A stretch of DNA of 64,000 nucleotides from Macrostomum lignano (taxonomy: Eukaryota). The stretch is taken from assembly GCA_002269645.1 (NCBI GenBank), contig NIVC01000422.1, positions 186,001-250,000 on the forward strand, in the 5' to 3' direction. Below the pieces are notes generated by a model. It saw only the letters and a program-made list of their open reading frames with translations, ran no database searches and had not been told where the DNA came from. Positions within the stretch are counted from its first letter, which is position 1. Each line of letters starts with the position of its first letter. The position numbers and the translations under genes are program-made. Shown piece after piece: positions 11,978 to 52,400 of this stretch.

Positions 11978-12015
11978 ATTATTTATTATTTAATTTTTTT
12001 TTCATCATAGAAAAA

Positions 12016-19613: not shown

Positions 19614-19734
19614 GTTGTGTGGGGTGACTTACTTGACTTAGCTGCAGGGTGGTCCGTAGACACAGCGGGGAGGCGAGGGTCGCCCATTCCGCTAGCCCCT
19701 GAAGGCCCGCAGACAGGCAGAGGCGTGGGGCCGG

Positions 19735-22700
19735 TCAGGGTGGTCCGCCGGTCCGTCCTGCAGCGTGATCTTCCGTTGGGAAGAAACTGGCTCGTCTAGT
19801 CGCCCGAAGGAACTGGATGAGCCGTGGGATGCTGTCGGGCTGGCAAACCTCGTCAATGGACGGGTTCGGCCCGAGGTAGCGTAGCCGGTCTCTGTTAAAG
19901 AAAGGGCAGTGACAGACAAAGTGCTGAGCATCTTCATTGTCGCACTCGCAAAAGGGGCAAATTTCGCTCTCGAGGTCGCCTCGGAGGAAGCAGTGCCTGG
20001 CGAGGTAGCCATGGCCGGTAAGGGTCATGACAAGGGCTCGAATATCCTTCCGATTCTGGTTCAGAAGGATGTTTCTGAGCCTGTGAGACGGGCAAGGAAC
20101 CGCGGCACGAGATTGCCGGCAGTTTTGGGTGCCCGCCCATCTGTCCCTGTGGAGGGAGTCAGCCCAGTCGTCGATCTGACGATTGATGACTGTCAAGGGC
20201 ATAGGGACCAGGGGGGCAGGGCCGAAAAAAGAGCCAGAGCCGCCCCTCTTGGCGAGGGTGTCTGCCAGCTCGTTCCCCGGAAACCCTGCGTGCCCTGGGA
20301 TCCACTTCAGCCTGACAGTATTGCTTCTGGCCAGGAGGTTGAGCTGCCGGGCGCAGTCGGCGACTGTCCGGGAGTTCGTTGTGGTGTGGCAAAGGGCCTG
20401 TAAGGCCGCTTGGCTGTCGGAGTGGATGACAATAGTCTTTCCTCTCGTAACCTTGGCGTTTAGCTCTGCAGCGCAAGAGCTGATGGCAAGGACTTCGTTC
20501 TGGAAGACTGTGGAGAGTCTACCAGTGTGCTGGGCATGCGTGGCAATTACGCGGCCGTTGATGATGATGCAGACCCCAAAGCCGGCGCGACCGTCTTTGA
20601 TGGATCCGTCCGTGTAGCAATGGACCTCCTGGAAATTCCAGTGGTCATTGGCAGCATCCCTAGAGGGGATGGTGACCTTGTAGCGCTGAAAGAGGTTGAG
20701 AGTGCGGGGTTCGCCGTCAGATAGGACGTGGAGCCCGCCGCTGTCTCTCAAGTCCTTGAGGCAGAGGTCAGCGTGGGGCAGAAGCTTGCGCTTAGCCATG
20801 GCCCTATGGGGCTGGATTCGAATGCCAGCGTCAGCTAGACGGCGGGCAGTCTTAGCCGCTTCCCTGCGGACAAAGATGTCCAGCGGAGGAATGTTGAGGA
20901 AGGCGTTGAGGCCATCGTAAGGAGCAGACGGAGGGGCGCTCATGATCGTGCGACAAGCGCGCCCTTGCGCTCTCCTGAGAGCCTCTAGACAGGTCTTTAT
21001 CTGCAGGGCGCTAGCCCAGATCAGGCCGCCATACGAGATAGCGGGCCTAACCATTGCAGTGTAGATCCACCAGAGGCGCTTGGGGTGAGCCCCCAGGTGG
21101 TGCCGACGGCCCTGCGCAATTGCGCGAGGACTGCGAAGGCCTTTTTGGCTTTTGTTTGAACGTGGGGAGACCAGTTCAGCCTGTGTCCAGGGTAATACCC
21201 AGACATTTAGTCTGCTTGCAGAAGGGGATTTCCCTTCCGTAAAGCGTGAGCGGCCGAATCTGCCACTTGGTCCTGCTGGTGAACATGATCGCTGCGGTCT
21301 TAGTCTCAGAGAGCCTTAAACCACAGCGGTCCGCCCATTGCTCAGCAGCGTAGATGAAGTTCTGAAGAAGGTCCCTGAGGGTATCAGGGGACGGACCAGA
21401 TGCCACCGCGGTGACATCGTCCGCATATCCAACTTTCAGAATGGGGTCAGGCCGAACATCCCGGAGGAGCTCATCATGACCATATTCCAGAGAACTGGAG
21501 ACAGCACCCCACCTTGCGGGCTACCTTTGCAGACGGGGACCGTCCTCTGGTAGCCCAGCAGACTGGCGGTGGCCGTGCGATGGCTGATCATGTACATGAT
21601 CCATCTGGTGAGATGTGAGTGCGTTAGCCTCTCACAAAGAGCTCTTCGGAACGCCTCAAAGAGGACGTTATCGAAGGCGCCAATGATGTCCAGGAAGATC
21701 CCCAGAGCAAAGCCACTACCAAGCACGGCCTTCTCGAGTTTATCGACCAGGACGTGCAGCGCGCTTTCAGTGGAGCGACCCGCCCGAAAAGCGTGCTGGT
21801 TCTCGCTGAGAGGTTTGTTCTTCAGCTCAACAGAGAGAAGGCGCCAAAGCACCAGTCTCTCCATCAGCTTGACCAGGGAGGAGGTCAAGCTGATCGGTCT
21901 GAAGGATTTGATAGAATGGTAGTCCGGGCGGCCTGGCTTAGGGATAAAGATCACCTTTGCCTCGGTCCATGCCTGCGGGACATAACCAAGCGTGATGCAT
22001 GCCCGAAGAAGGCTGCAAAGTTTGCGCAGGAAGCCTGGGCATTTAACCGCCTCTCTTAGAAGGGCCGGTACAATGCCGTCGGGTCCTGGGGCTTTGAAAG
22101 GCTTGAAGGAATTTGCCGCTCTCACAATGCGGTCCTCCGTGATGATAGATGCAGCCAGCGCGTGACCTCCCTCCGAGTGATCCGGAGTGGTCTGGTTAGC
22201 TGGCTCGTTAGGGAAAAACGCAGTGAGCATTACATCAAGCGTTTCCCCTGGGTTGTCCGTGGACGTACCGTCGGTGCGTTTGACCGAGGAGAGCTTAGAC
22301 ATTTTGTCCAGCGTGAGCGCTTTCACAACTCTGGAGGTGGGGCGTGAGCCCTCTAGCTCCTCACAGTATTGTCGCCATTTTTGAGCCTTTGCATTCCTAA
22401 CCTGCCTTTTAAACTCATGAATTGCTTCATGATAGGCGGTTTGGTCTGCAGGGCTCTTAGTTTTAGTTGCTCTGCGGTGGAGTCTCTTAGCCCTGCGACG
22501 GAGGTTGCCGAGCTCGGGATTCCACCACGGCGCCGATTTTTTCCCTTTATAGGCTTTTAAAGGGCAGGACGCCTCAAAGGCGGCGGTTAGCGTCTCTGTC
22601 AAAACAGTCGCGCACTCATCCGCCTCTCGGCACGACGTGATCGTGGATGGTTGGCCAGGAGACCGATGGAATTCCTTCAGGGCGAGCCCGAAGGTTTCCC

Positions 22701-23442
22701 AATCCGTATTTCTGGCGTTCCGTCTCCACATAACACGAGTTGCGCTACGCGCGGCCATTAGGTTGAAGGAGATGAACTTGTGATCCGATAGTGAGGACAC
22801 TGGAAGCACCCGCCACGCCCCAATACTCTGGTAGAGTCTGGGCGTTGCGAGCGTAGCGTCGATCACCTCCGACCACCGTCCGTTGTCAAAGGTAGGGGTG
22901 GACCCAGAGTTGCAGAACTCGAGGGTCGTAGAGGCAACGTAGGCTAGGAGGTCTTCGCCTCTCTGATTAATGCCAGTGCTGCCCCAGTGAGTGTGGTGGG
23001 CGTTGATGTCGCCGGCAACCATGAGCTCGTAGTTTTTGGCAGAGCAGAGCTCTACCAGCGTAGCGAGGGCTCTGGGGACGACCGCAGCATCGCCTGGTAG
23101 GTAAACCGAGGCAATGAGGGTGGTCTTCCCAGGAAGAAGGTCCTCGGATTGGATGACGCAGATGTCCCTGTTGGACAGGTCCGATCTGAGCCACGCACTG
23201 AGCGTTTTGCTCGCAAAGATGCAAGCTCTGGGAGGCTGGTTGGCCTCGCGAGGGTAAGTATAAAAACAATTGTAGCCAGCAGGGGCGTTTTGAGGCTTAC
23301 CTCTGAGAGTCCAGGGTTCCTGGACGAGGATGAGCCCCGGCTTGTCGAGCTCGGCGTAACGCATAAGGTTGACCGAGGCTGCGACGCAGTGCTGCAGATT
23401 AATCTGCAGGCAATGGATTCCCTGGTTGCTGATCATTATCAC
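19735..23442 (-). CDS. LINE copy 1 ORF2 (APE endonuclease, RT, RNase H); three 1-bp frameshifts near 21480, 21190 and 21090
   Basis: CLQINLQH, LVQEPW, AGDINAHH, SDH; RPISLTS, FLDIIGAFD, GSPQGGVLSP, GYADDV; RNase H CYTDGS, NEVLAI, HSDSQAAL, WIPGH, GNELAD. Confidence 0.93.
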
Positions 23443-24904
23443 GCAGTTGGGGAATCGTTGAGCAGGTCATCCTCCTCCTTTTCAGTGGTGGGTGACCCGC
23501 AGACCTCCATGGGAGTTTCAGCGTCCTCAGCAGTTAGGGTGGCTGTGGAGTCCTCCGCGGACGTGAGCCCAGCGTGGACGTTACCGTCGCCTCTCCTGCG
23601 TGCTTCGGTGCTGTCACTGCCCGTCCCCTCTGCCTCGTCGGTCAGGTCGATGCGGGTGGCGCCAGCCTCCTGGTGAGTCACAGACTCGAACCAGTCGGTC
23701 GGAGCCTCCCCGCTTAGAGTCTGGCCTTCTGGCTGTTGGGGTGGAGCGCGAGAAGCGCGGGCCCGCTCACGATGCGCACGAAGGTTCTTGGCCTGGTCCA
23801 GCGCGCGCTGGATCAGGCCGGACCTCCGGGTGCTCCTGGCGGGTCTGCGATTGCGATTTCCGGTTTCAGCAGCGCGAACTGCCTTACCGGGCATAGGATC
23901 GGCCGTTTGCCTCGGCTTCTTTGCCGGAGGAGCCTGGGCCCCAGTTCCGGTTTCGGAAGCTTTGGCATTCTTGGCTTCATCAGCTTTCCGCTCCTCGCAA
24001 CGGAGGATGGTCAGCTGAGTCAGACCAATATGAATTGTGGACTTAGGCGGCAAGCGCTTAGCCCAGTCATCAGAGAGCCCTAGGATCACCGTAGCCCCCT
24101 TCTCCTTGCGGGAAGTGGCGTGGTGTAGGAGCCCGTTGACCTTAAGGTCGGGGTGCAGCTTTAGCAATATTTGCCTAAGCTGATCTCCGGACTTAATGGC
24201 ACTGCCGGCCGGGATCCAGACGCGAAAGCGCTGGGTCTTCTGTCGTTCGCCCTCGCTGGCGAAGACGAGCTTGCCGAGCTTCTTGGGCCAGTTCAGCTTT
24301 GGCAGAAGCTCGCGTAGATTGCGGCTGCTCTCCTCCGAGCTGCACCAGATGAAGATGCAGCCGTCGGTCTTGGCAGACTTGACCACGCTCACAGGGCGGC
24401 CCGCCAGGAGCTGGTCGATGAGCGCAGCATCGATGGTGCGCCAGGCACTGTCGAGCTCGTCGGCCGTGAGGTCCTGCTCTTCCCCGAAGACGATGACCGC
24501 CGGTTGGAGCTTGACCTTTGAGGCGTAGTTGGTGGCGGCGGTTCCCGAAGGCCCGGCCGCGCTTGTAGCAGGTATACTGGGTGGCTCACCAGCGGGGGTT
24601 GTATCCTGGGGGCAGGGGTTGCTGTGGTTCCTTTCGGCCCAACAGCAGCCTCGCCCTCCCTAGGTTCCCCTTCCGCCGGTGGCCGGCCCGCAGTACCCCG
24701 TAGTCGCCGTCGCCGCTCGTTGCGGCGTTGGTTGCGGGTGCGTCGGGCTTCAGCGGAGGGCCCGGTTGCGCGTGCGGGCATGTCACCAGCCGAGCCGGCG
24801 GCAAGCCCATCTGCCCCCGGTGGGGCGGCGCTGGTGCCAGAGTCACCGGCCGGAGTTGCCGGGGCCCCGGCTTCAGCGGGGGTTAAAGAGGCGGATGACG
24901 CCAT
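23439..24904 (-). CDS. LINE copy 1 ORF1 (gag-like nucleic-acid-binding protein), frameshifted near 24600-24390
   Basis: Fragments 24389..24904 and 23439..24392 lie directly upstream of ORF2; basic RRNQRRNERRRR patch; the central domain resembles ORF1 of copy 2 (ILLKLHPDL..GLLHH vs VLLRLNPDL..GLVYH). Confidence 0.75.
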
Positions 24905-25087
24905 AGCTGAAAGCGGGAAGGAGTGAGCTGAGTCACAAAAGAAAGAGGAAAGAAGAAAAAGAAAAGGACCGCTAGCGACCGGACAACCCCCCGGCCTTCC
25001 AGCCCATCGGCACGGTCAAACACCTTAGGCATTAGGGGGTACGTTAAGCAGTACCACGGCCTGCAGGCTGGCAAGCCAGACCCGCAT

Positions 25088-25375
25088 ACCCAAATTCGGC
25101 CGAAGCCACTGGATGGGTCGCCAGCGTCGGAGCCCAGTCTGTCCAGCAGCCCTAGGGTCTGCCTTGAACACACGCGGGACGAGTACCCTGGGTCGACTTG
25201 TGAAACAGCGTGAGGGGGGGGGTCTGCGGCTGCCAGTGGCAAATAGCGGGTGCAGACCTCCCTCTCCAGCCTTGACCTGCTGAATATAGGGGCAGGCGTG
25301 AAGCATCGCAGACCGTAGCCCTTAGGCCTGGTCTGTCTCATACTTCACTGGCGTGCTGAATACACCTTCGCGTGC
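25088..25375 (-). ncRNA. Predicted HDV-like self-cleaving ribozyme at the 5' end of LINE copy 1
   Basis: P1 GCACGC (25375-25370) / GCGUGU (25175-25170); P2 ACCCA/UGGGU; P3 GGG/CCC; L3 UACUCGU; P1.1 AC/GU; J4/2 CGAAU with candidate catalytic C at 25098. One C shorter than copy 2 at the P3/P1 junction. Confidence 0.7.
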
Positions 25376-26113
25376 GTTGTGTGGGGTTGTAGTGTTGTTG
25401 TCTGTTCTATGAGATGGCTTAAGTTCGACAGTGTCTTGTTTAATTGCATGGGATGGTTTCAATCCAGTCATACGTGTGACTTCATTGTTCAGTTGTTCTA
25501 TAACAGTGGGGAGCCGGTCTGTCCATTTTGAATAGTACTGACCACTTTTTAGTTTCAGCTCTTCAGCTGTCTGCTTAGTGAATAGCCTCTTGGCTAGAGT
25601 TAGATTGAATCTTTCCACAAAAGCCTGGTCTCTGTGGAGCTCAGTTCTGCCATAGCGAATCTCTGTGTTTTTCTTTTCCATAAGGGATTTCACTGCACCC
25701 ATGAATTCCTTACCCGGGTCGGTCATAAAGGTTTGGGGGTATGTGAGCGGAGAGTTTTTATAAATATCTTGCAGTGCGCTGGCAACAACCTCTGACTTCT
25801 TCGTCTTGAGTGGGCGAGCTTCCTTATATCTGGAAGCAATGTCAATAATTGTAAGAGCATACTTGTAGCCCGAGTCATTGGGGAGAAACAGAAGATCTGC
25901 TTGGTGCGCCTCATTAGGTTTATAAATACTGAAATGGGGCCTTTCAAATTTTACTGGTGGCAAATAGACTTGAAAGACAGCCTGCTTAGAGAGCCATTTT
26001 TCTACTGTAGCTTTTGGTTCCTTACTCAGCTCCATGAGTTTACTAACAGCATTTTTGCCTACAAAGAATCCTTTGTCGCTGTAGTAGAGTTTTTTAAGTT
26101 TCTGATCTGTCAT
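25376..26113 (-). CDS. Polinton retroviral-like (rve) integrase, N-terminal and catalytic part
   Basis: DDE motifs HQADLLFL, TIIDIASRY, FMTDPGKEF, VERFNLTL; cut by the LINE after codon 246. Confidence 0.95.
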
Positions 26114-35844: not shown

Positions 35845-36520
35845 TTTTCATGACGCTTCTATGCTTGTTTACATGACGCTTCTATGATTGTATACATGAC
35901 GCTTCTATGATTGTTTACATGACGCTTCTATGATTGTATACATGACGCTTCTATGATTGTTTACATGACGCTTTTATGATTGTTTACATGACGCTTCTAT
36001 GATTTTTACATGACGCTTCTATGATTTTTACATGACGCTTCTATGATTGTTTACATGACGCTTCTATGATTGTTTACATGACGCTTCTATGATTTTAACA
36101 TGACGCTTCTATGATTTTTTTACATGACGCTTCTATGATTGTTTACATGACGCTTGTATGATTGTTTACATGACGCTTGTATGATTTTAACATGACGCTT
36201 CTATGATTGTTTACATTACGCTTCTATGATTGCTTGCATGACGCTTCTATGATTTTTTATGACGCTTTTATGATTTTAACATGACGCTTCTATGATTTTT
36301 TTACATGACGCTTCTATGATTGTTTACATGACGCTTGTATGATTGTTTACATGACGCTTTTATGATTTTAACATGACGCTTCTATGATTGTTTACATTAC
36401 GCTTCTATGATTTTTACATGACGCTTCTATGATTTTTACATGACGCTTCTATGATTGTTTACATGACGCTTCTATGATTGTTTACATGACGCTTGTATGA
36501 TTGTTTACATGACGCTTCCA
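35845..36520 (+). repeat. Second array of the 21-22-bp CATGACGCTTCTATGATT minisatellite, about 30 copies
   Basis: Read directly. Confidence 0.96.
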
Positions 36521-36885
36521 TAATTTTTTTTGTCTTGGCGTTAAAAGGCTTTAATTAAAAAAACTCTACTCTCTAAAAATTCGAACCATCGTCCCTGCAT
36601 TTAGCAGTTTAGTCTGTTTACCTCTAGGCTAGCTCTCATGAATTTTAGTCATTACCCCTAAATAGAAAATATTCCCAAGACAGCAAGCATCCCCCCAGTA
36701 GCAAGCATCCCCTAATACTCCTAGCAAGCATCCACCCAGATAGCAAGCATCTTGCAGATAGCAAGCATACCCCAAATAATGTAGAAGCATCCTTCCAGAT
36801 AGCAAGCATCCTGCACATAGCAAGAATCCCTAAATAGCAAGCATCCCTGGATAGAAATAATCCTATACATGTAGCCAAGCTTATC

Positions 36886-39721
36886 AAGCGCAGTAATCCT
36901 TGGCTATCGAGTGCAGTAATCCTTGGTTTATTAATAGCAATAATCCATGGCTTATCGAGTGCAGTAATCCTTGGTTTATTAATAGCAATAATCCTTGGCT
37001 TATCGAGTGCAGTAATTCATGGTTTATTAATAGCAATAATCCTTGGCTTATCGAGTGCAGTAATCCTTGGTTTATTAATAGCAATAATCCATGCCTTATC
37101 GAGTGCAGTAATCCTTGGTTTATTAATAGCAATAATCCTTGGCTTATCGAGTGCAGTAATCCTTGGTTTGCCAAGTGCATAATCCTTGGTTTATTAATAG
37201 CAATAATCCTTGGTTTATCGAGTGCAGTAATCCTTGGTTTATTAATAGCAATAATCCTTGGCTTATCGAGTGCAGTAATCCTTGGTTTATTAATAGCAAT
37301 AATCCATGGCTTATCGAGTGCAGTAATCCTTGGTTTGCCAAGAGCAATAGTCCTTGGCTTATCGAGTGCAGTAATCCTTGGTTTGCCAAGAGCAATAGTC
37401 CTTGGTTTATTGAGTGCAGTAATCCTTGGTTTATTAATAGCAATAGTCCTTGGTTTATTGAGTGCAGTAATCCTTGGTTTATAATAGCAATAATCCTTGG
37501 CTTATCGAGTGCAGTAATCCTTGGTTTGCCAAGTGCATAATCCTTGGTTTATCGAGTGCAGTAATCCTTGGTTTATTAATAGCAATAATCCTTGGTTTAT
37601 CGAGTGCAGTAATCCTTGGTTTATTAATAGCAATAATCCATGGCTTATCGAGTGCAGTAATCCTTGGTTTGCCAAGAGCAATAGTCCTTGGCTTATCGAG
37701 TGCAGTAATCCTTGGTTTGCCAAGAGCAATAGTCCTTGGTTTATTGAGTGCAGTAATCCTTGGTTTATTAATAGCAATAGTCCTTGGTTTATTGAGTGCA
37801 GTAATCCTTGGTTTATTAATAGCAATAATCCTTGGCTTATCGAGTGCAGTAATCCTTGGTTTGCCAAGTGCATAATCCTTGGTTTATTAATAGCAATAAT
37901 CCTTGGTTTATCGAGTGCAGTAATCCTTGGTTTATTAATAGCAATAATCCTTGGCTTATCGAGTGCAGTAATCCTTGGTTTATTAATAGCAATAATCCAT
38001 GGCTTATCAAGTGCAGTAATCCTTGGTTTGCCAAGAGCAATAGTCCTTGGCTTATCGAGTGCAGTAATCCTTGGTTTGCCAAGAGCAATAGTCCTTGGTT
38101 TATTGAGTGCAGTAATCCTTGGTTTATTAATAGCAATAGTCCTTGGTTTATTGAGTGCAGTAATCCTTGGTTTATTAATAGCAATAATCCTTGGCTTATC
38201 GAGTGCAGTAATCCTTGGTTTGCCAAGTGCATAATCCTTGGTTTATCGAGTGCAGTAATCCTTGGTTTATTAATAGCAATAATCCTTGGCTTATAGAGTG
38301 CAGTAATCCTTGGTTTGCCAAGAGCAATAGTCCTTGGCTTATCGAGTGCAGTAATCCTTGGTTTGCCAAGAGCAATAGTCCTTGGTTTATTGAGTGCAGT
38401 AATCCTTGGTTTGCCAAGAGCAATAGTCCTTGGTTTATTGAGTGCAGTAATCCTTGGTTTATTAATAGCAATAGTCCTTGGTTTATTGAGTGCAGTAATC
38501 CTTGGTTTATTAATAGCAATAATCCTTGGTTTATCGAGTGCAGTAATCCTTAGTTTATTAATAGCAATAATCCTTGGCTTATCGAGTGCAGTAATCCTTG
38601 GTTTATTAATAGCAATAGTCCTTGGCTTATCGAGTGCAGTAATCCTTGGTTTGCCAAGAGCAATAGTCCTTGGTTTATTGAGTGCAGTAATCCTTGGTTT
38701 ATTAATAGCAATAATCCATGGCTTATCGAGTGCAGTAATCCTTGGTTTATTAATAGCAATAATCCTTGGTTTATCGAGTGCATTAATCCTTGGTTTATTA
38801 ATAGCAATAATCCTTGGCTTATCGAGTGCAGTAATCCTTGGTTTATTAATAGCAATAATCCTTGGCTTATCGAGTGCAGTAATCCTTGGTTTGCCAAGAG
38901 CAATAGTCCTTGGTTTATTGAGTGCAGTAATCCTTGGTTTATTAATAGCAATAGTCCTTGGTTTATTGAGTGCAGTAATGCTTGGTTTATTAATAGCAAT
39001 AATCCTTGGCTTATCGATTGCAGTAATCCTTGGTTTGCCAAGTGCATAATCCTTGGTTTATTAATAGCAATAATCCATGGTTTATCGAGTGCAGTAATCC
39101 TTAGTTTATTAATAGCAATAATCCTTGGCTTATCGAGTGCAGTAATCCTTGGTTTATTAATAGCAATAATCCATGGCTTATCGAGTGCAGTAATCCTTGG
39201 TTTGCCAAGAGCAATAGTCCTTGGCTTATCGAGTGCAGTAATCCTTGGTTTGCCAAGAGCGATAGTCCTTGGTTTATTGAGTGCAGTAATCCTTGGTTTA
39301 TTAATAGCAATAGTCCTTGGCTTATCGAGTGCAGTAATCCTTGGTTTATTAATAGCAATAATCCTTGGTTTATCGAGTGCAGTAATCCTTGGTTTATTAA
39401 TAGCAATAATCCTTGGCTTATCGAGTGCAGTAATCCTTGGTTTATTAATAGCAATAATCCATGGCTTATGAGTGCAGTAATCCTTGGTTTATTAATAGCA
39501 ATAATCCTTGGCTTATCGAGTGCAGTAATTCATGGTTTATTAATAGCAATAATCCTTGGCTTATCGAGTGCAGTAATCCTTGGTTTATTAATAGCAATAA
39601 TCCATGGCTTATCGAGTGCAGTAATCCTTGGTTTGCCAAGAGCAATAATCCTTGGCTTATCGAGTGCAGTATTCCTTGGTTTGCCAAGAGCAATAATCCT
39701 TAGCTTATCGAGTGCAGTAAT
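36886..39721 (+). repeat. 24-bp monomer / 48-bp dimer satellite (GAGTGCAGTAATCCTTGGTTTATT + AATAGCAATAATCCTTGGCTTATC)
   Basis: About 2.8 kb read directly; recurring variant monomers GCCAAGAGCAATAGTCC and GCCAAGTGCATAATCC. Confidence 0.97.
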
Positions 39722-40587
39722 CTAAGTGTTTTTATTTAGTCCTTTAATAAAAGCTTTTAATAAAAAATTTTACACTACTACTTTTAAACTACTTAGATTC
39801 GAACCCAGGTCGCTGCATTAGCAGTCTGGTATGCTCAGCTCTAGGCTAGCTCTCATCGAAGTTATCAGTGAATTTGTACCACTTATATAATTCAACACTC
39901 ACACCAAGTCAGGTAGAGTAAAAAGTCACGCGAAGCAGTTATGACATAATCAATTTCTTAGGCAAGTCAGTACCAGTGTCTATGAAAGTTAACAATATGG
40001 TTACGTAATATAAATTCAGTACTGCACTATACTTTCACCCTCAAAGCTGTGACGCAATTCAATTGAGTGTCAAATTCAGCCAGTACACAGACGATAAATA
40101 AAGTGTATTGTGATGCAATCTATTTCAGAATCAGAATTCAACCAGTCAGATTTTTCTCTAGCATTCTTACAATGCATTTCAGGTCGAAAGAGCTGCTTGA
40201 CCTTTGCAAAAAATCATGTTTTTCGAATATTTAATCCCTTTAACATTGAGCAATTTCTTAGCCAATATGCATGTACCGTCCCGGGAAAATTTCTGATCGA
40301 ATGGTGCAAGTTTGAAGAAAATCGGTTGAGCCGTTCGGGAGAAAATCAATTACAAGCAAGCAACCAAGCATTTCATTTTTAGTATATTAGACGAGGCCAA
40401 CTCCTCCTTCGGAGAAGAAAGGGGAAGAACTCCAATCAGCGGAATTCCATTCCCTGAACTCCATCAGCGGAATCCCATTTTCCAACACCTTGACTTACTT
40501 TGACTTAGCTGCAGGGCTGTCCCGGAGGGGACACAGCGGGAAGGCGCGGGCGCCCATTCCGCTAGTCCCTGAACGGCCGACGCGTCG

Positions 40588-43500
40588 CTATGGACGGAGG
40601 GTTGGCGCCGCCCAGGGAGGTCCCCCAGTGTCGCCAGCAGCTATGGTGCTCTCTGGAAAGGAGAGTTCAGCCCTGCGGGTGGCCCGAAGGTAGCGCATGA
40701 GCTGATTAAAGTTTTCGGGTTTGCACGCTTCAGTAATAGATGTGTGTGGCCCGAGGTAAGTGAGTCTGGCCCGCGTGAAGGCGGGACAGATGCTGACGAA
40801 ATGCTCAGCGGTTTCGTCACCTGAGTTGCAGAAACTACAGGTGGCGTTGGTGGCGTTGCCCTGCAGGTACTGGTGCCTGGAGAAGCAGCCGTGACCAGAG
40901 AGGGTCATGGTGGCAGCCCGGATGTCTCTGCGCGAGAGGCGCAAGAGGAGCTTCCGGAGCTGGTGAGAGGGCTGAGGGACAGCGCCTCTGGATTGCCTGC
41001 AGTTTGTGCGGTTCGCCCAAGTCGAGCGGTGCTGAGTCCTGATCCACGCTTTGATGCGCGAGTCGATGACACAGCCAGGGATCGGGACAAGAGGTTCGGG
41101 GCCGAGAGAGGAGCCGGAGGCACCAACTTTTGCAAGGGTGTCAGCCAACTCATTTCCTCGGATCCCCACATGCCCCGGAACCCACTTAAGGGTAATTTTG
41201 TTGGCGGAACCCAACACATTGAGGAGTTTGATACAGTCAAGGACTGTAGCAGAGTTGGTGCTGCAGCCACTGATGGCGTGCAAGGCAGCTTGGCTGTCCG
41301 AATGGAAAATGATGTTCTTACCAGTAACGCCAGTGGCGAGAAGCTCTGCAGTGCAGGAGCTGATGGCCAGAACTTCATTTTGGAAAACACTGGAGTTGAC
41401 CCCAGTGTATTGAGCGTGGGTAGCGATGACCCTCCCGTTCAGAAAGATTCCAACACCAAAGCCGGTGTTGGCTGACTGCTTAGAACCGTCGGTGTAGCAA
41501 TGAAGCTCACCAGGGTTCCAATGGTCATTGATGTTATCGCGCGAGTCGATAGCTACGGAGTAGCGCTGTCTCAGGTTGAGCGTTGAGGCAATGCCATCGG
41601 TGAAGACGCGATTGGCCTGACACTCGTTGAGAAAGTTGAGGCACAGATCGCTATGCGGGACAAGGTTCCGCTTAGCAGGTGCTCTCATGTAAATGAATTT
41701 GACGCCGGCATCAATTAGACGCCGCGTCGTTCTAGCCGCCTCACCCCTGATGAAGAGGTCAAGAGGCGGAAGATTAAGAAAGGCCCCCATGCCAGCAAAG
41801 GGCGTGGACCTGGTGGCGTTGCAGATGAGCCTACACGCTCTGCCTTGGATCGTGTTGAGCAGGTCTGCATGGCTTTTGACCTGGGTAGCGCTAACCCAGA
41901 CAACAGAGGCGTACGTAATGGCAGGTCTAACTACGGAAGTATAGATCCACCAAAGCCGCTTTGGGGATAGACCCCAAGAAGTGCCAAGTGCTCGTCGGAG
42001 CTGGGCCAGGATGGCTGAGGCACGCTTAGCTTTTGCTTTCACGTGGAAGGACCAGTTGAGCCGGTGGTCAAGTGTGACCCCGAGACATCTGGTCTGGTGC
42101 GCGAAGGCAATATCTCTGCCGTAGAGCTGCAGAGGACGTATGTTCCAGCGTAGTCTGCTGGTAAACATAATGGCAACGGTTTTGGGCTCAGAGAGTTCCA
42201 AACCATTGTCATTGGCCCAGGATTCTGCTTTGCGGATAAAGCTCTGCATCAGATCCCTGAGCGTGCTGGGAGACGGTCCTGCCACAATGGCCGTGACGTC
42301 ATCAGCATACCCGACTTTGAAGACGGGGTCAGGTCGGGAGTCACTCAGAAGAGCGTCCATGACCAGGTTCCAGAGCGTCGGGGTGAGGACTCCGCCTTGG
42401 GGTCCACCCTTACAGACTCTGGTGGAGGCAGTTTGCCCAAGAAGTTGGGCAGTGACCGTACGGTTGGAGATCATGTACATGATCCACCGTATGAGGGTAG
42501 CATGAGCTTTGCGATTTTGAAGGGCCCTCTGAAACGCTTCAAAGATAACGTTGTCGAAGGCGCCAACAATGTCAAGAAAGAGAGCCAGGGCGTAACCGTC
42601 ACCCAGTACCGCCCGTTCAATCTTTTCGACAATCGCATGCAGGGCGCTGTCAGTCGACCTCCCGGTACGGAAGGCGTGCTGATTATTGCTGAGGGGCATC
42701 GCTGTCAGCTCGCAGGAGAGCAGCCGCCAGAGAATAAGCCTCTCAGTGAGCTTAAGCATTGCTGACGTTAAGCTAATTGGCCGGAAGGCCTTGACGCTTT
42801 GGTAGTCACCCTTCCCAGGTTTGGGAATAAAGACTACTCGAGCTTCAGTCCAGCTTTTGGGAACGTATCCCAGCTGGATAGAGGCCCGCATAAGATTGCG
42901 GGTGAGTCTCAGGAACGAGGGTATCTTGGCTGCTTCACGAAGGAGAACAGGGTAGATACCATCAGGTCCAGGAGATTTGAAGGGTTTGAAGGTTCTGACC
43001 GCACGAGCGATTAGGTCTTCAGTGACAATGCCCGCCGCTAGGGTGGCTCCATCCATCGAATGGTTGGGCTCCGGTCTAGCAGTAGGTACCCTCGGGAAGA
43101 ATGTGCTAAGCATATGCTGAAGCACTTCTTCAGGGTCTTTAGTAAGAGAGCCATCATCTTTTTTATCATGGCTAATTTGGACATTTTGTCCATTGTAAGG
43201 GCCTTGACAAGCCTAGAAGTAGGTCTGTCTTGATCCAATTCATTGCAGAATTGGCGCCACTTACATTCCTTGGCCTTGCGCACTTCAGATTTGAAATTGC
43301 GGGAGGCTTGCCGGAAAAGCTCCATGTCCTCCGGGTTTCCGGTCTTCATGGCACGGCGATGAAGGCTTTTGGCCTTCCGCCTGAGTTTCCCCAGCTCCGG
43401 GTTCCACCACGGCGCCGAGGTCTTGCCTCTGTAGGCGCGAGCAGGACAAGCCGCTTCGTAGGCTGCAATAATGCAACCTGTCAGCGTCTCAGCCATATGA

Positions 43501-44326
43501 TCCACATCCTCGCAGGTCTCAATCGGACGTAAGTCCGTGAGTTCCTGCAGGTGCAGATCAAGGGCAGCCTTGTAGGCCGCCCAATCTGTGTTGCGGATAT
43601 TGCGTCTCCAAGTGATCGGAGACTGGGTTTTAGTGTCCGCGATATTAAAGGCGATAAAGCAGTGGTCAGACAGGGAGGGCTCCTCAGACCAGACTCTCCA
43701 CTCCTTGACTCTGTCAAAGAGTCTTGGGGTAACGAGTGTGGCGTCGAGGACCTCGGTCCATCTGCCATTATTAAAGGTAGGAGTGCTGCCGCGGTTGCAG
43801 AGCATGAGGTTTGTGTTAGAGATGAGGGCCAGAAGCTCCTCTCCTCTAGTGTTGGTATCTTTGCTGCCCCAGTGCTTGTGGTGCGCGTTGAGGTCGCCCC
43901 CTAAGCACAGCTCAGCGTTCTGGGACTCGCAGTACTGCGCAAGGCGCAGTAAACTCTCGGAGCAGGGTCTCTGTCGCCTGGGATATAAACCGAGGCAACA
44001 AGACACGTACGCGGAGAGAAATGATTAGATTGGATGACGCAAAGGTCTCCATCAGAGAGATCAGTCCTCAGCCAAGCCTGGAGATGGCTAGCAGCGAGGA
44101 TAGCCGCTCTAGGGCGGCTGTTCCCCGGGCCACACACATAAAAATCAGAGTAGCCAGAGGGAATGTTGGGCAACTTACCGTTGCGCATCCAGGGTTCCTG
44201 GATCAGGATGAGGCCTGGCCTGTACAGCTCAGCAATCTTCATCAGATTTACTGACGCAGATACGCAATGCTGTAAATTTATTTGCAGACAGAATGTCGCT
44301 CCTTTGGCAGCGTGGAGCTTAGTCAT
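40588..44326 (-). CDS. LINE copy 2 ORF2 (APE-RT-RNase H), two frameshifts near 44000 and 43150
   Basis: CLQINLQH, LIQEPW, GGDLNAHH, SDHCFI, APWWNPEL, RPISLTS, FLDIVGAFD, GGPQGGVLTP, GYADDV, CYTDGS, WVPGH, GNELAD; C-terminal CSFC...HFVSIC. Confidence 0.94.
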
Positions 44327-44365
44327 ACTGTATTAAATGCAATATCTGGCTAGAGCCCAGGGCCA

Positions 44366-45870
44366 TCAAGGAGACTTGGACAACAGATCGTCCTCGTCCC
44401 AGGCCGCTGGGGCTTGACTGGGAGATGGGAGTTGGTCGACGTCCATGGCCTCCTCACCCCCACCGGCCCCCCCAGCAGAGTCCTCAGGCTCCGATGACAG
44501 GATGGAGGAAGCTTCCTCACCTGCATCTTTACCTTCAGACCCCACCAAGGTGGCCGAGGAGAGCTCGGATTCCGAAGACCCGGCCTCGTCCTCAACTCCT
44601 TCTCCGACTGGCAGGTTTGGTTCCCGGGGCTCGGCCGGAGCCGTTACCGCGGTCGCCGAACTGCTGCTAGCAGAGGGGCGAGATGCAGCTTTGGCTTTGG
44701 GATCGGCTTGCGCCTTTCCTTGGGCCTTAGACTGCGCCCCGCTCTTGCCGGAGATGCCGGGGTTGGCAGTAGCCTTCCCTTTGGCAGACTTTCCTCGGCG
44801 CAACTTGAGCTTGAGGGCACCCAGCTGGAAAGAGGATCCATTGGGTACCGACTCGCCCAAGTGCTGGAAAGGCCGAGGACAATTGAGTTGCCCGTCTCCC
44901 CCCTGCGGACTTTGCGGTGATACACCAGTCCACTAGCAGGGAGGTCGGGGTTCAGACGCAGTAGGACCCGGCGAATAACGTCTGGTCCAGCTGCGGTGCT
45001 CTTAGCAGGGACGAAAACCACATAGGGTATCGTCTTTGGACGCTGGCCCTCGCGAAGAAAAAGAGCTCCACCAAGGTCAGCATCCAAGGAGACCGTCGGT
45101 AGCCGCTGGAGCAGCCGCCGAGCGTCCTCCTCGCTGCTAGGAGCAATAAGAACGAATGTGCTTCGCAGCACCATCCGCTCAACGCCGATGGAGATTCCCT
45201 CCTCGACAGTCAGCTCAATCAGATAGGAGTCAACAGCACTCCACACTTTTTGAAGCTGATCAGTGGTCCAGTCCTGGTCGCGACCTTGGATGATCACTCC
45301 CGGGATTTTGGCCTTGGCCTTCGCCGCAAAGGTAGCTCCCGAAGGAACCTCCTTGTTGGCAGTGGCCATTTGTTGCGCCGTGGTTTCGGCCTCAGCAGCC
45401 GCGGCAGCAGCTCCAGGGAGCGCCGCCGCTGAACTACTGGAGCTTCCACCGGCCGGCCCGCCTGGTTGCCTTGGGACTCCAGTCGCTTCAGCATCCATGG
45501 TGGACGCCGCCGCTTTGGCCCCCGCAGCTCCCTTCTTGGCCTGCCTTTTGGCGCGTTGTTTAGCGCGTTTGCGCTCAAGCCGAGCCCGCTGAGCTTCATC
45601 GGATCTGCCAGATTTGGCCGGTCCTTTAGGCTCAGAGCTCGCGGTTCCCTTAGATCCACCAGCGGAGCTGGCAGGTCTTAGGATATTTTGAGTTTGGTAG
45701 CTCTGGTCGGATCTGCCAGCAGAGCCAGCCGGTCCTTCCTTTGCCACAGTTGAATCAGTCGGTTGGGATCTGCCAGCAGGGCCGGCCGGTCCTTCGGACT
45801 GAGGTTGGGGTTTAGAAGGGTCCCCGTCCCTAGAAATAGCTTGTTTATCCATAGTCGGCTCGAAGGCCAT
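44366..45870 (-). CDS. LINE copy 2 ORF1, frameshifted near 44850
   Basis: Probable ATG at 45870 (MAFEPT); basic RAKQRAKRQAKK patch; fragments 44644..45927 and 44366..44860. Confidence 0.72.
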
Positions 45871-46102
45871 GATAAAAGGTTGGTGGGCTACCCTCAAAGG
45901 GGCGCGGTACCCACCCGGCCGCTCCACCTGACCGGGCAGTAGGCCAATAGCACCCTCAAGGCTGGCCCGACACCAGGAGGGGGACCGCTTGCGACCGGAC
46001 TACTCCCCGGCCTTCCAGCCCATCGGCACGGTCAACACCTTAGGCATTAGAGAGTACGTTGAGCAGTACCACGGCCTGCAGGTTGGCGAGCCAGACCCGC
46101 AT

Positions 46103-46387
46103 ACCCAAATTCGGCCGAAGCCACTGGATAGGGTCGCCAGCGCCGGAGCCCAGTCTGTCCAGCAGCCCTAGGGACTGCCTTGAACACACGCGGGGACGAG
46201 TACCCTGGGTCGACTTGCGAGACAGCGTGGGGGGGGTCTGCGGCTGCCAGAGGCAAATAGAGGGTGCAGACCTCCCACCAGCCTTGACCTGCTGAAGATA
46301 GGGGCAGGCGTGAAGCATCGCAGACCTTAGCCCATGGGCCTAGTCTGTCTCATACTTCACTGGCATGCTGAATACGCCTTCGCGTGC
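46103..46387 (-). ncRNA. Predicted HDV-like self-cleaving ribozyme at the 5' end of LINE copy 2
   Basis: P1 GCACGCG (46387-46381) / CGCGUGU (46192-46186), 7 bp with G1-U wobble; P2 ACCCA (46210-46206) / UGGGU (46107-46103); P3 GGG/CCC; L3 UACUCGU; P1.1 AC/GU; J4/2 CGAAU with candidate catalytic C at 46113. Confidence 0.8.
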
Positions 46388-46402
46388 CATTTTCCAACAC
46401 CT

Positions 46403-49400
46403 CTCCGCGCAACAGAAATCGTCTCCGTGAAACTGAACACACTATCGAAATCCTCTCCGTGAAACTGAACACCATCGAAATATTCTCCGCGAAATAGAAA
46501 TCCTCTCCGTGAAACTGGACTAAATCGAAATTTCTACGTCAAACAGCCCAGCTCTCAGAATTCATTGGTTAGGGTTAGGGTTAGGGTTAGAGCTACACAC
46601 AGCTGCGTGTTGAAAGGCGCCGTAAAAACATTGAACCAATTAAATTGCGCAACTTATTTCTCAGGCAGTCAGTATCAGCCTCAGTTAAAGTTAACAAAAA
46701 GATTGCGCAATCTAAATCAACCCTCAAATACACAGCAACCGACCCCCTTCCAATATGCAGTGCAGCTAGAAATTGAACCCCCCCTCACCAACTATTGGGG
46801 GGTCGGTCGAACCCCCATTGAACTCCAAAATGAGAACAATCTTTGCAGAAAGCTAAAAGTATGAAAATCTTTTCTTGAATGCTGTGAATTTAATTTTCAT
46901 ATTTAAAGCAAAAAACTTATATCCCCGAACTCATCGCAGCAAGATCTTTCCAGCAATATAAGTCTCTCCTCTCTAAGTTCAAAACTCGAGCAACAGTTAG
47001 TGTTTGAAACTTTCTGATTTTAAGCATTGAAATATCGAGTGTACGTTCACTGCCTGCAACAGTTAATTGCAATTGTCTATACAGTCAGCCCGTGCGCCAA
47101 GGTCCAAGTGCACACGAAATGATTGCGCAATCTAAATCAACCCTCCAATACACAGCGACTGACCCCCTTCCGCAGTGGCAATTAAAAGTTGAACCGCCCC
47201 CCCTCCCACCAACTGTTGGGGGGTTGGTCGAACCCCATTGAACCCCAAAATGAGTACAATCTTTCCAGAAAGTAAAAAGTATGGAAGTTGTTTTCGATCG
47301 CTGTGTTTTTTCTTTTCACATTTAAAACAAACAACTTATATCCCCGAACTCAGTGTTGCAAGATCTTTCCAGCAATATAAGTCTATTCTTTTAAAGTTTA
47401 GAACTCGAGCAACAGTTAGCGTTTGAAATGTCCCGATTTAAAGCATTGAAGTATCGAGTGTACGTTCACCTGCCTGCTAAAAAGGCTCGCATGTTGATGC
47501 ATTGAATTTCAGTGTGCAAAAAATACACCGGGCTGCCTAATTGAAAATCAGAGCACGTATCGTTGCGCAATTGTCTATACAGTCAGCCCGTGCGCCAAGG
47601 TCCAAGTGTACACACGCCGCCACTGAGAACGCGAGCACCCCCACTGGAGAGAAAATACACTGCAGAGATAGGAGAAAGTTATGGCGCAATCGCTCAAAAT
47701 TCATGCAAATTTTTAGCTCCAAGCAGAAAGAGGGGACAAATAAGATTATCAAAGGTCAAGATTGCAGTGTTTTGCTTTTTTCGGGATCTTAAAATGTAAA
47801 AATAAAAAATTGAAATAGCCCACTGCCATCCTCGGAAAATTTGCAGTTTTCCCATATAAGTTTCGACGCTGACTTGCAAGTCGTCTAGGAGGAGATATGT
47901 ATCACACAGACAAACAACGCACCAGTTTTAGTATTAAGACGAGGCCAACTCCTCCTCTGGAGGAGAAAGGGGAAGAATTCCCATCACCGGTACTCCATTC
48001 CCTGAAATGCCATTCCCTGAATCCCATCATCCAACTCCTCTCCGCGAAACTGAACATCATCGAAATCTTCTCCGTAAAAGAGAACTCCATCAAACACCTC
48101 TCCGTGAAACTGACATTCATCAAAATCCCCTCCGAGAAATAGAAATCCTCTCCGTGAAACTGGACTCCATGGAAATCCTCTCCGTGAAACTGACATTCAT
48201 CAAAATCCCCTCCGAGAAACAGAAATCCTCTCCGTGAAACTGGACTCCATGGAAATCCTCTCCGTGAAACTGACATTCATCAAAATCCCTCCGAGAAACA
48301 GAAATCCTCTCCGTGAAACTGGACTCCATGGAAATCCTCTCCGTGAAACTGACATCCATCAAAATCGTCTTCGCGAAACAGAAATTCTCTCCATTAAACT
48401 GGACTGAATCGAAATTTTCTCCGTAAAAAAGAATCAACTCTCAGGATTTAGTGGTTAGGGTTAGGGTTAGGGTTAGGGTTAGAGCTACAACGCAGCAGCG
48501 TGTTGAACCAATTGAATTAATTGAATGCGCAACCGATTTCACAGTCAGTCAGTATCAGTCTCGGTAAAAGTTAACAAAAAGATTGCGCAAACTAAATCAA
48601 CCCTCCAATACACAGCGACTGACCCCCTTCCAATACGCAGTGGCAATTAAAAGTTGAACCCCCCCCTCCCACCAACTGTTGGGGGGTTGGTCGAACCCCC
48701 ATTGAACTCCAAAATGAGTACACTGCCGAAAGTTAAAAGTATGGAAATCGTTTTTTAAATGCTGTGCTTTTTGTTTTCACATTTAAAGCAAACAACTTAT
48801 ATCCCCGAACTCAGTATTGCAAGATCTTTCCAGTAATATAAGTCTCTCCTCTGAAAGTTTAAAACTCGAGGAACAGTTAGCGCTTGAAATTTCCTGATTT
48901 AAAGCATTAAAGTATCGAGTGTACGTTCACAGCCTGCTAAAGAGGCTCGCAAGTTTATTCATTAAATTTTACTGCCCAGCAAATACACATGGCTGCCTAT
49001 TGAATGCCGCCGATAATAAAACCAATTAAATCTCGACACAGTCCTAGCTATCTCCTTACACTGTACAACTGCTATGTACACTCAGCCCAAGCCCAACCCC
49101 CCATTCCGGGGGAATCGTTAAATTTAATTGAACCCCCCAACACGCGGGGGTTTTGCATTTAACGCAGAACACGCGCACCCACCCCCCCCCAAAATACACA
49201 GCGACCCGCGGGCGGAGGTTGGGGTGGCTATTTTTACAAACAGACTGCAACCCCTCCACTGGAGAGGCAGAGTGGCCACAGAAGGGGCAAAGAAGGTTAA
49301 GAAATCAGTTTTCTGCTTTTTTAGGGATCTTAAAATGTAAAAATGAAAGATTAAAATAGCTATAAACCCAATCCGGAAAATTTGCAGTTTTCCCATATAA

Positions 49401-52400
49401 GTTTCAACGCTGACTTGCCAGTAGTTTAGGAGAAAAGTTGCAACATACGGACAAACAAACAAACATCGCACCACTTTTAGTATTAAGACGAGGCCAACTC
49501 CTCCTTCGGAGAAGAAAGGGGAAGAACTCCAATCAGCGGAATTCCATTCCCTGAACTCCATCAGCGGAATCCCATTTTCCAACACCTCTCCGCGCAACAG
49601 AAATCGTCTCCGTGAAACTGAACACACTATCGAAATCCTCTCCGTGAAACTGAACACCATCGAAATATTCTCCGCGAAATAGAAATCCTCTCCGTGAAAC
49701 TGGACTAAATCGAAATTTCTACGTCAAACAGCCCAGCTCTCAGAATTCATTGGTTAAGGTTAGGGTTAGGGTTAGAGCTACACACAGCTGCGTGTTGAAA
49801 GGCGCCGTAAAAACATTGAACCAATTAAATTGCGCAACTTATTTCTCAGGCAGTCAGTATCAGCCTCAGTTAAAGTTAACAAAAAGATTGCGCAATCTAA
49901 ATCAACCCTCAAATACACAGCAACCGACCCCCCTTCCAATACGCAGTGCAGCTAGAAATTGAACCCCCCCTCACCAACTATTGGGGGGTCGGTCGAACCC
50001 CCATTGAACTCCAAAATGAGAACAATCTTTGCAGAAAGCTAAAAGTATGAAAATCTTTTCTTGAATGCTGTGAATTTAATTTTCATATTTAAAGTAAAAA
50101 ACTTATATCCCCGAACTCATTGCAGCAAGATCTTTCCAGCAATATAAGTCTCTCCTCTCTAAGTTCAAAACTCGAGCAACAGTTAGTGTTTGAAACTTTC
50201 TGATTTTAAGCATTGAAATATCGAGTGTACGTTCACTGCCTGCAACAGTTAATTGCAATTGTCTATACAGTCAGCCCGTGCGCCAAGGTCCAAGTGCACA
50301 CGAAATGATTGCGCAATCTAAATCAACCCTCCAATACACAGCGACTGACCCCCTTCCGCAGTGGCAATTAAAAGTTGAACCGCCCCCCTCCCACCAACTG
50401 TTGGGGGGTTGGTCGAACCCCATTGAACCCCAAAATGAGTACAATCTTTCCAGAAAGTAAAAAGTATGGATGTTGTTTTCGATCGCTGTGTTTTTTCTTT
50501 TCACATTTAAAACAAACAACTTATATCCCCGAACTCAGTGTTGCAAGATCTTTCCAGCAATATAAGTCTATTCTTTTAAAGTTTAGAACTCGAGCAACAG
50601 TTAGCGTTTGAAATGTCCCGATTTAAAGCATTGAAGTATCGAGTGTACGTTCACCTGCCTGCTAAAAAGGCTCGCATGTTGATGCATTGAATTTCAGTGT
50701 GCAAAAAATACACCGGGCTGCCTAATTGAAAATCAGAGCACGTATCGTTGCGCAATTGTCTATACAGTCAGCCCGTGCGCCAAGGTCCAAGTGTACACAC
50801 GCCGCCACTGAGAACGCGAGCACCCCCACTGGAGAGAAAATACACTGCAGAGATAGGAGAAAGTTATGGCGCAATCGCTCAAAATTCATGCAAATTTTTA
50901 GCTCCAAGCAGAAAGAGGGGACAAATAAGATTATCAAAGGTCAAGATTGCAGTGTTTTGCTTTTTTCGGGATCTTAAAATGTAAAAATAAAAAATTGAAA
51001 TAGCCCACTGCCATCCTCGGAAAATTTGCAGTTTTCCCATATAAGTTTCGACGCTGACTTGCAAGTCGTCTAGGAGGAGATATGTATCACACAGACAAAC
51101 AACGCACCAGTTTTAGTATTAATAAGAGAGAGAAGAAAACATATCGTTGCGCAATTGTCTATACAATCAGCCAGTGAGCTAGGGTCCGATTGTACACATG
51201 CAGCCACTGAGAATGCCCCCATTCCCCCATTGGAGAGAAAATACACTGCCGAGATAGGAGAAAGTTGTGGCGTAATCACTAAAAAATTGATGCCAACTGG
51301 CCCAGTTACACCCCTTCAGCTAAAAGAATACACTACACAGATAGGCCAGCTGTTGTGGCGCAATCACTAAGAGTTGCGCAAGGTGGATCATATTCCCTAT
51401 TGTTTTATTATTTCTGCTTTTTTAGGGATCTTAAAATATAAAAATGAAAGATTAAAATAGCTATAAACCCAACCCGGAAAATTTGCAGTTTACCCATATA
51501 AGTTTCAACGCTGAGTTGCAAGTAGTCTAGGAGAAAAATTGCAACATACAGACAGACGCACGTCGCACCACTTTTAGTATCAAGACAAGTAGTCTAGGAG
51601 AAAAATTGCAACATACAGACAGACGCACGTCGCACCACTTTTAGTATCAAGAAATTGCAACATACAGACAGACAAACATCGCACCACTTTTAGTATTAAG
51701 ACGAGGCCAACTCCTTCGATGGAGGAGAAAGGGGAAGAACTCCCATCACCGGAATTCCATTCCCTGAACTCCATCAGCTGAATCCCAAGACCCGAATCCC
51801 ATTATCTAACTGTTCTCCAAATCCATCAAAATCCTCTCTGTGAAACTGAACACGATCGAAATCCTCTCCGCGAAACAGAAATCCTCTCCGTGAAACTTGA
51901 CTCAATCGAAAGTTTCTCCGTCAAACAACTAAACTCTCAGGATTCAGTGGTTAGGGTTAGGGTTAGGGTTGGAGCTGCACAGAGCTGCGTGTTGAAAAGG
52001 TCCGATAAAAAATGAGATAATTGAATCAAAAGATTGCGCAATTTACGCTCGTATTTCTAAGTAAGTCAGTATCAGTCTCAGTTAAAGTTAACAAAAATAT
52101 TGCGCAATCTAAATCAACCCTCCATCCAATACACAGCGACCGACCCCCTTCCAATACGCAGTGGCAATTAGAAATTGAACCCCCCCCCAACTGTTGGGGG
52201 GTCAGTCGAACACCATTGAACTCCTAAAATGAGTACAATCTTTGCAATAAGTTAAAAGTATGGAAATAGTTTTTCCAATGCAGAGCATTTAGTTTTCATA
52301 TTTAAAGCAAACAATTTATATCCCCGAACTCAGCGTTGCAAGTTCTTTCCAGCAATATAAGTCTCTCCTCTCAAAGTTAAAAACTCCAGCAACAGTCTGA

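Follow-up and report, generated by a model that had tools for sequence, protein, structure and literature searches.

Organization of the locus

The window analyzed is a 64,000-nucleotide stretch of the Macrostomum lignano genome (assembly GCA_002269645.1, contig NIVC01000422.1, forward-strand positions 186,001 to 250,000), and all coordinates refer to it. Two full-length LINE copies, called here A and B, reside in the window. Copy A and its target site feature the following parts.

40491..46387, minus strand: LINE copy A, 5.9 kb, delimited by ORFs, Pfam matches and target site duplication (TSD)
44644-45927, minus strand: ORF1 of copy A, 427 codons, from the ORF list
43901-44326, 43038-44006 and 40588-43125, minus strand: ORF2 of copy A (APE, RT, RNase H), in three frames, from ORFs and Pfam
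46388..46402, minus strand: left (5') TSD copy AGGTGTTGGAAAATG, 15 bp, adjoining G46387
40476..40490, minus strand: right (3') TSD copy AGGTGTTGGAAAATG, directly after the 3' end
49573..49587, minus strand: uninterrupted paralogous empty site, where the 15-mer is present once

ORF2 of copy A matches the Pfam domains Exo_endo_phos, Exo_endo_phos_2, RVT_1 and RNase_H, and features in addition a C-terminal Cys/His motif. On this basis the element can only be placed among the RNase-H-bearing APE LINEs. ORF1 is 87–99% identical to M. lignano gene models in UniRef, and shifts frame near 44860 (ORFs 44366-45927). The ORFs of both copies are split by frame changes, and several differences between copies A and B fall in homopolymer runs, which denotes either decayed copies or indel errors of long-read assembly. 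The 3' tail of copy A reads ...TAAGTCAAAGTAAGTCA, and the element ends with ...GCTAAGTCAAAGTAAGTCA at 40491.

A 1.1-kb duplicate at 49472-50585 aligns to the joined flanks of copy A, reaching 97.7% identity over the junction. This local segmental duplication either predates or escaped the insertion of LINE A. As the empty site is intact, the boundaries of the copy A insertion are firm. The base following the 15-mer in the empty site is also a G, and the copy A boundary is thus ambiguous by 1 nt.

Several repeats surround copy A. An interstitial telomere-like run, (CCCTAA)x4, is found on the minus strand at 46567-46590, about 180 nt upstream of the LINE. Members of a repeat family with units of ~30–32 nt (GAAATCCTCTCCGTGAAACTGAAC...) reside at 46415-46494, 48025-48428, 49600-49679 and 51829-51927, and make up the surroundings in which LINE A inserted. 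On the other side, a 24-bp satellite (consensus TTATCAAGTGCAATAATCCTTGGT; ~119 copies, 73% matches) spans 36881-39722 and gives rise to long spurious ORFs in all frames. A 23-bp tandem repeat (TGATTGTTTACATGACGCTTCTA) occupies 36000-36529 in ~23 copies, its higher-order periods being 68 and 181.

A predicted HDV-like ribozyme at the 5' end of copy A

The first 285 nt of copy A can be parsed into the segments of an HDV-like ribozyme. They are given below in the 5' to 3' order of the minus-strand RNA (46387 to 46103), and their lengths were verified by a regular-expression parse of this RNA.

46103..46387, minus strand: putative HDV-like ribozyme of copy A, 285 nt, predicted cut 5' of G46387 (sequence; sole strict-descriptor match in the window)
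46387-46381, minus strand: P1 5' strand GCACGCG, nucleotide +1 being G46387; pairs with 46192-46186
46380-46211, minus strand: J1/2 peripheral domain, 170 nt, stacked hairpins; own fold -68.3 kcal/mol
46210-46206, minus strand: P2 5' strand ACCCA; partner UGGGU at 46107-46103, duplex -5.8 kcal/mol
46205-46203, minus strand: P3 GGG, forming the catalytic-core hairpin with L3 and P3'
46202-46196, minus strand: L3 UACUCGU, 7 nt, the core hairpin loop
46195-46193, minus strand: P3' CCC, core hairpin
46192-46186, minus strand: P1 3' strand CGCGUGU (pair check)
46185-46184, minus strand: GU, the P1.1 partners of the A and C of L3 (pair check)
46183-46114, minus strand: P4 domain, 70 nt, imperfect (A/B consensus fold)
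46113-46108, minus strand: J4/2 CGAAUU, C46113 being the predicted catalytic cytosine; fits the descriptor C-N-R-A, with two additional U residues
46107-46103, minus strand: P2 3' strand UGGGU (sequence parse, duplex energy)

A scan with our own descriptor found the strand order of the nested double pseudoknot, P1-J1/2-P2-P3-L3-P3'-P1'-P1.1-P4-J4/2-P2'. P1 measures 7 bp in copy A, and is made by six Watson-Crick pairs plus a basal G1·U202 pair, a G·U pair being typical of the cleavage site in HDV-like ribozymes. P3 is made by three G-C pairs. P2 consists of five Watson-Crick pairs, where HDV-like ribozymes usually have about 7 bp. A 4-bp extension of P2 (CGCA/UGCG) was considered and rejected: it is broken in copy B, which keeps an alternative helix closing J1/2.

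The helices and junctions listed in the preliminary description, made from the letters of the DNA, are all present at their coordinates, the catalytic C included. The same holds for two departures from the common scheme that it pointed out. P1.1, described as AC/GU in place of the usual CC/GG, is formed by the pairs A187-U204 and C188-G203, the A-U pair being a variant of the more usual one. J4/2, described as two U longer, consists of CGAA (46113-46110) and two further U that precede P2', and the descriptor matches when two extra residues are allowed. The view of P4 as one long helix did not stand. Folding rejected a single clean hairpin in favor of an imperfect 70-nt domain, the best model of which has a long-range 11-bp helix (GGGCUGCUGGA/UCCAGUGGCUU in the A+B consensus fold) separated from the core by 4–15 unpaired nt, and P4 is not closed beside the catalytic C. 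In an alternative pairing, a GGC-UUCG-GCC hairpin could sequester C46113.

To call the variant unusual, as had been done, was an overstatement, since a large J1/2, an A in L3 and a variable J4/2 have precedents in R2 elements (PMC3774820). In silkmoth R2, J1/2 loops measure 216–498 nt, and activity depends on a portion of the loop; C. hercules has an A as residue 2 of L3, the conservation of J4/2 is poor, and P4 is absent (PMC3774820). P4, a helix stacking beneath P1.1, is dispensable in some HDV-like ribozymes. The G and C of L3 are important in HDV-like ribozymes (PMC3774820).

Descriptor and Rfam searches

The strict descriptor was defined by a 7-bp P1 starting with G·U and including at most one wobble pair; a J1/2 of up to 220 nt; a P2 of 5 Watson-Crick bp directly abutting a 3-bp Watson-Crick P3; an L3 of 6–8 nt; a P1.1 of two Watson-Crick pairs; a P4 region of 8–130 nt; and C-N-R-A plus 0–2 nt before P2'. 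It matched the 64-kb window once, exactly at 46387..46103, both strands being scanned (128 kb of strand). The null model consisted of 300 shuffles in which dinucleotides were preserved within 2-kb blocks. Shuffled windows hosted on average 0.017 strict matches, and any match at all occurred in 5 of the 300. For a strict match to begin by chance on a base and strand fixed in advance, the probability is ~1e-7. Relaxed descriptors are unspecific, with many matches in the window and up to 7.6 per shuffle; hence the argument is carried by the strict match together with its position.

The search against Rfam that had been suggested as a check found no match to HDV-family models in the window at gathering threshold, in the interval 45900-46600 at E≤10, or with the core alone. 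This negative result is weak, because the curated models are short, and insertions of 170 nt and 70 nt are expected to defeat them. Weak matches to other Rfam families were judged to be due to chance. One, to the Mycobacterium sRNA ncrMT1302 (45943-46037, minus strand; 22 bits, E=0.09, gathering score 45), sits past the ribozyme, within the conserved leader; the second was to the NPPA antisense RNA.

Energy calculations place the pseudoknot within reach of nested folds. The nested minimum free energy of the 285 nt is -119.1 kcal/mol, in a fold in which the P1 and P2 strands take alternative partners. Forcing P1 and P3, and leaving the strands of P2 and P1.1 free, yields -109.7 kcal/mol, to which P2 contributes about -5.8 kcal/mol more, and P1.1 a further small amount. 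The double pseudoknot is therefore predicted to be energetically competitive, while its dominance is not demonstrable from these values. The folding z-score of the whole ribozyme, -1.18, is uninformative.

Copy B and the 5' module shared by two LINE families

BLAST comparison of copy A with the window identified a second LINE, which belongs to a different family of the same clade.

19625..25375, minus strand: LINE copy B, 5.75 kb (BLAST of copy A against the window)
25088..25375, minus strand: putative ribozyme of copy B, 288 nt, 6-bp P1 (alignment; descriptor match with P1 set at 6 bp)
25386-25376 and 19624-19614, minus strand: TSD of copy B, CCCCACACAAC, 11 bp, unambiguous (sequence)
45976..46387 (24966-25375 in copy B), minus strand: 5' module common to A and B, ~410 nt, ribozyme plus 127 nt (BLAST, sliding window)

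Homology between the copies starts exactly at G46387 in A and at G25375 in B. In copy B the duplication CCCCACACAAC is followed directly by GCACGCG, and because the two abut, the G is unambiguously the first base of the element. The 3' tail is the same as in copy A. Position +1 of the predicted ribozyme thus coincides with the LINE 5' end, beside the TSD, in both of the full-length copies in the window. The preliminary description had placed G+1 as the first base inside the TSD, and had proposed to map the 5' ends of further copies. The first claim stands as to the cut site lying at the LINE 5' end; the exact base, ambiguous by 1 nt in copy A, is settled by copy B, and the latter, the further copy so mapped, begins at the same G after its 11-bp TSD.

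Copy B lacks one C of the CCCC run which spans P3' and P1', and its P1 is reduced to 6 bp; P3 and L3 are otherwise identical. The missing C, located within a homopolymer run, could be an assembly error. A 6-bp P1 is within the range of 6–7 bp of the HDV-like family (PMC4908430). The catalytic C, the C and G of L3, and the G·U base pair are intact in both copies. ORF2 of copy B is broken near 21436 (21054-21436).

Similarity between the copies is markedly uneven. Nucleotide identity, measured in sliding windows, is 94–95% over the first ~400 nt, falls to 48–67% throughout the coding sequence, and is 77% over the last 130 nt. At the protein level, identity is 53–63% for ORF2 and 37–41% for ORF1. 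This mosaic pattern reflects either a module recently passed from one lineage to another, or local gene conversion between copies located 21 kb apart.

Copy B lies within a virus-like DNA transposon of Maverick/Polinton type, which extends from ~8000 to 28500 and includes ORFs at 8883-10169, 11860-12816, 16210-18726 and 25322-26113. Pfam matches in this element are an rve integrase, a packaging ATPase of the Pox_A32 type, DNA_pol_B_2 (a protein-primed polymerase) and, weakly, a double jelly-roll. The LINE is inserted in the integrase ORF in the same orientation, an arrangement which suits co-transcription followed by ribozyme-mediated release of the LINE RNA.

Substitutions in the ribozyme preserve predicted pairs

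Folds of J1/2 and P4 were predicted from copy A alone, the core helices were added, and the copy B substitutions were mapped onto the resulting structure. Fourteen substitutions distinguish the two ribozymes: 10 involve unpaired residues, 3 preserve pairing, and 1 breaks a pair. The pair-preserving changes include both halves of C12-G170, replaced by U-A in the helix closing J1/2, and one U·G to C-G change. None of the 12 substitutions located in J1/2 breaks a predicted pair. The only pair-breaking change is found in a P4 hairpin, at a residue that is unpaired in an alternative P4 model. Random placement of 14 substitutions breaks on average 6.5–7.3 pairs, and results in as few broken pairs as observed, or fewer, with P≈0.001. 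The same test, applied as an internal negative control to the downstream 127 nt of the module, revealed no structural bias (P=0.34). P1, P2 and P3 are invariant between the copies, and core covariation is absent from this comparison of two sequences. As read on the predicted folds, the pattern speaks for selection on the RNA fold of the peripheral domain, and has no direct bearing on the catalytic core.

Relatives of the element

Relatives of copy A ORF1 were limited to three chimeric M. lignano gene models in UniRef, which have no DNA on record, and a search with an alignment of the ORF1 domain found nothing. Relatives of ORF2 share at most 36% identity with it, a short M. lignano UniRef fragment aside. 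One cluster of ORF2 relatives from organisms other than Macrostomum includes 75 members. Four distant relatives (L001-L004; ~31–36% identity), among the closest outside Macrostomum, were fetched from eukaryotic ENA assemblies, L001 and L002 from ENA ERZ25067590. The region upstream of ORF1 of all four was searched for HDV-like motifs with strict, relaxed and L3 regular-expression scans, and none was found. The ORF1 of L002 matches Pfam DUF4780. A metagenome scan with the 18-nt core gave three matches, all attributable to chance and lacking the fold.

Interpretation and alternative explanations

The significance of the descriptor match, the TSD and empty site of copy A, the start of copy B at the same G, and the structure-preserving substitutions are four independent lines of support for an HDV-like ribozyme at the LINE 5' end, and agree with the original proposal, in which the predicted cut coincides with that end. 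We consider it likely that the first 285 nt of this M. lignano LINE are a genuine HDV-like 5'-processing ribozyme. Counting against this reading are the negative Rfam searches, the short P2, the lengthened J4/2, a P4 that does not close beside the catalytic C, the hairpin that could sequester this residue, the alternative partners of P1 and P2 in the nested fold, the invariance of the core helices between the two copies, and the negative scans of the four distant relatives. In addition, both copies have frameshifted ORFs, and neither is necessarily live.

The broken ORFs would also suit an HDV-like descendant which is catalytically dead or very slow, and whose fold serves mainly as a platform for cap-independent translation or for binding of the ORF proteins. 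The short 5-bp P2, the two additional U in J4/2, the A-U pair within P1.1, and the 1-nt deletion in P3'/P1' of copy B point in the same direction; cleavage can become >100-fold slower where a structured J1/2 with long linkers occurs together with a short P2 (PMC4908430), and roles in translation initiation have been proposed for the R2 and L1Tc ribozymes (PMC6765202). Yet both full-length copies start exactly at +1, which requires source RNAs ending there, the key residues (catalytic C, C and G of L3, G·U pair) are retained in both, and the 6-bp P1 of copy B is inside the family range (PMC4908430). We regard loss of activity as unlikely.

Precise 5' ends are likewise predicted by a fixed transcription start site. 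Internal promoters located in a conserved 5' UTR are known in I, jockey, Doc and L1 elements. G46387 might mark the start of transcription from an internal RNA polymerase II promoter, the HDV-like arrangement having arisen by chance in a GC-rich structured leader. A conserved module of ~410 nt in two families is also expected of an internal promoter, and no ribozyme is recognized by Rfam. A DNA promoter does not predict that substitutions avoid RNA pairs and that one pair covaries, nor that a strict match expected 0.017 times per window starts exactly on the junction base; by reading of the sequence, moreover, no initiator-like YYANWYY with A at +1 is present. The two functions can coexist and are not mutually exclusive: promoter and ribozyme occupy the same bases in L1Tc (PMC3383444). 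As a replacement for the ribozyme, a promoter seems to us rather improbable, slightly more so than an inactive descendant. A chance motif in a GC-rich LINE leader, devoid of structural or catalytic role, would suit the unremarkable z-score (-1.18) and the frequent relaxed matches (7.6 per shuffle), but is most improbable given the strict expectation of 0.017 per window, the positional coincidence at two independent junctions, and a substitution pattern with P≈0.001 whose internal control is negative.

Under the favored reading of an active 5' ribozyme, the LINE would be transcribed within read-through transcripts of the host or of a neighboring transposon, as the element apparently lacks a canonical initiator at +1. 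The RNA would fold into P1, a structured J1/2, P2, P3/L3, P1.1 and P4, and C46113 of J4/2 would catalyze the cut immediately 5' of G46387. Cleavage would release a 5'-OH LINE RNA beginning at the first nucleotide of the element, and target-primed reverse transcription, if complete, would place a full copy of the ribozyme in each new insertion, beside the TSD. The 170-nt J1/2 is probably a 'pinch' domain drawing P1 and P2 together, and the cleaved ribozyme may assist the translation of ORF1 without a cap, a role put forward for R2 and L1Tc. Catalysis, co-transcription and the role in translation are all inferred.

Comparison with known systems

HDV-like ribozymes have been described at the 5' ends of R2, R4, Dong, RTE, Baggins and L1Tc LINEs (PMC3774820, PMC3185411, PMC6765202). 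Outside R2, elements are typically cut at their very first base, with precedents in R4, Dong, Baggins, L1Tc and RTE (PMC3774820, PMC6765202). Baggins1 (LOA clade, Drosophila) and L1Tc/ingi are likewise APE-type, RNase-H-bearing LINEs which are not site-specific. They are cut at the first nucleotide, and new copies carry the whole ribozyme beside the TSD, as is predicted here (PMC3774820, PMC3185411, PMC6765202). In contrast to the Macrostomum ribozyme (285 nt, with a J1/2 of 170 nt and a P4 of 70 nt), the L1Tc ribozyme L1TcRz is compact (77 nt) and doubles as promoter. The hosts differ as well, Macrostomum being a free-living flatworm. In trypanosomatids, the 5' ribozyme/promoter module Pr77 is common to several element families, a spread which resembles that of the module shared by copies A and B (PMC4035085).

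Features in common with R2 ribozymes are the double pseudoknot, the 3-bp P3, the 7-nt L3, the catalytic C in J4/2 and the very large J1/2. R2 itself is site-specific for 28S rDNA and encodes a restriction-like endonuclease; Pol I co-transcribes it, and the cut often lies upstream in 28S. The Macrostomum LINE encodes an APE and is flanked by TSDs at sites that vary; it has kept a P4 domain, and would be cut at its own 5' end. Among flatworms, planarian R2 is predicted to carry an HDV-like ribozyme (PMC3774820).

The ribozyme drz-Agam-2, found in an RTE element of Anopheles gambiae, also has a structured J1/2 (the P1.2 domain), and structured J1/2 domains speed cleavage by 'pinching' P1 and P2 (PMC4908430). 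J1/2 is predicted to be strongly structured in the Macrostomum copies, and its pairs are preserved between them. Agam-2 has a single P1.2 helix and a P2 of 12 bp, whereas the Macrostomum ribozyme combines a multi-hairpin 170-nt domain with a 5-bp P2; combinations of this type were slow in engineered Agam-2 variants (PMC4908430).

Perere-3, an RTE element of Schistosoma mansoni, is a flatworm LINE in which a 5' self-cleaving ribozyme adjoins the TSD and releases the element from co-transcripts (PMC8501958). The Perere-3 ribozyme is a twister variant, that of Macrostomum is HDV-like. The TSD contributes to the P1 stem in Perere-3, while the Macrostomum ribozyme is wholly inside the element.

Significance

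Release of LINE RNA by a 5' ribozyme is already a textbook mechanism in the field, known in other LINE families. No description of HDV-like ribozymes in Macrostomum emerged from the literature search. The present analysis extends the set of elements whose 5' ends would be defined by an HDV-like ribozyme to a free-living flatworm and to an RNase-H-bearing APE LINE. Together with the Schistosoma twister variants, it suggests that ribozymes of at least two classes have been taken up by flatworm LINEs to do one and the same job. The ribozyme serves as a tag of full-length copies, and predicts uncapped 5'-OH LINE RNAs in a model organism for regeneration. It also provides a natural large, structured J1/2 for testing the 'pinch' model.

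The most interesting aspect is the module common to two diverged LINE families. The ribozyme 5' UTR may be a portable cassette, recently transferred between LINE lineages by processes such as template switching or recombination, with J1/2 possibly having a second role in protein binding or translation; this is a tentative suggestion, which we hold a little less likely true than false. If true, the gain of a ribozyme cassette would be a possible general route by which promoter-less LINEs become autonomous of their insertion context.
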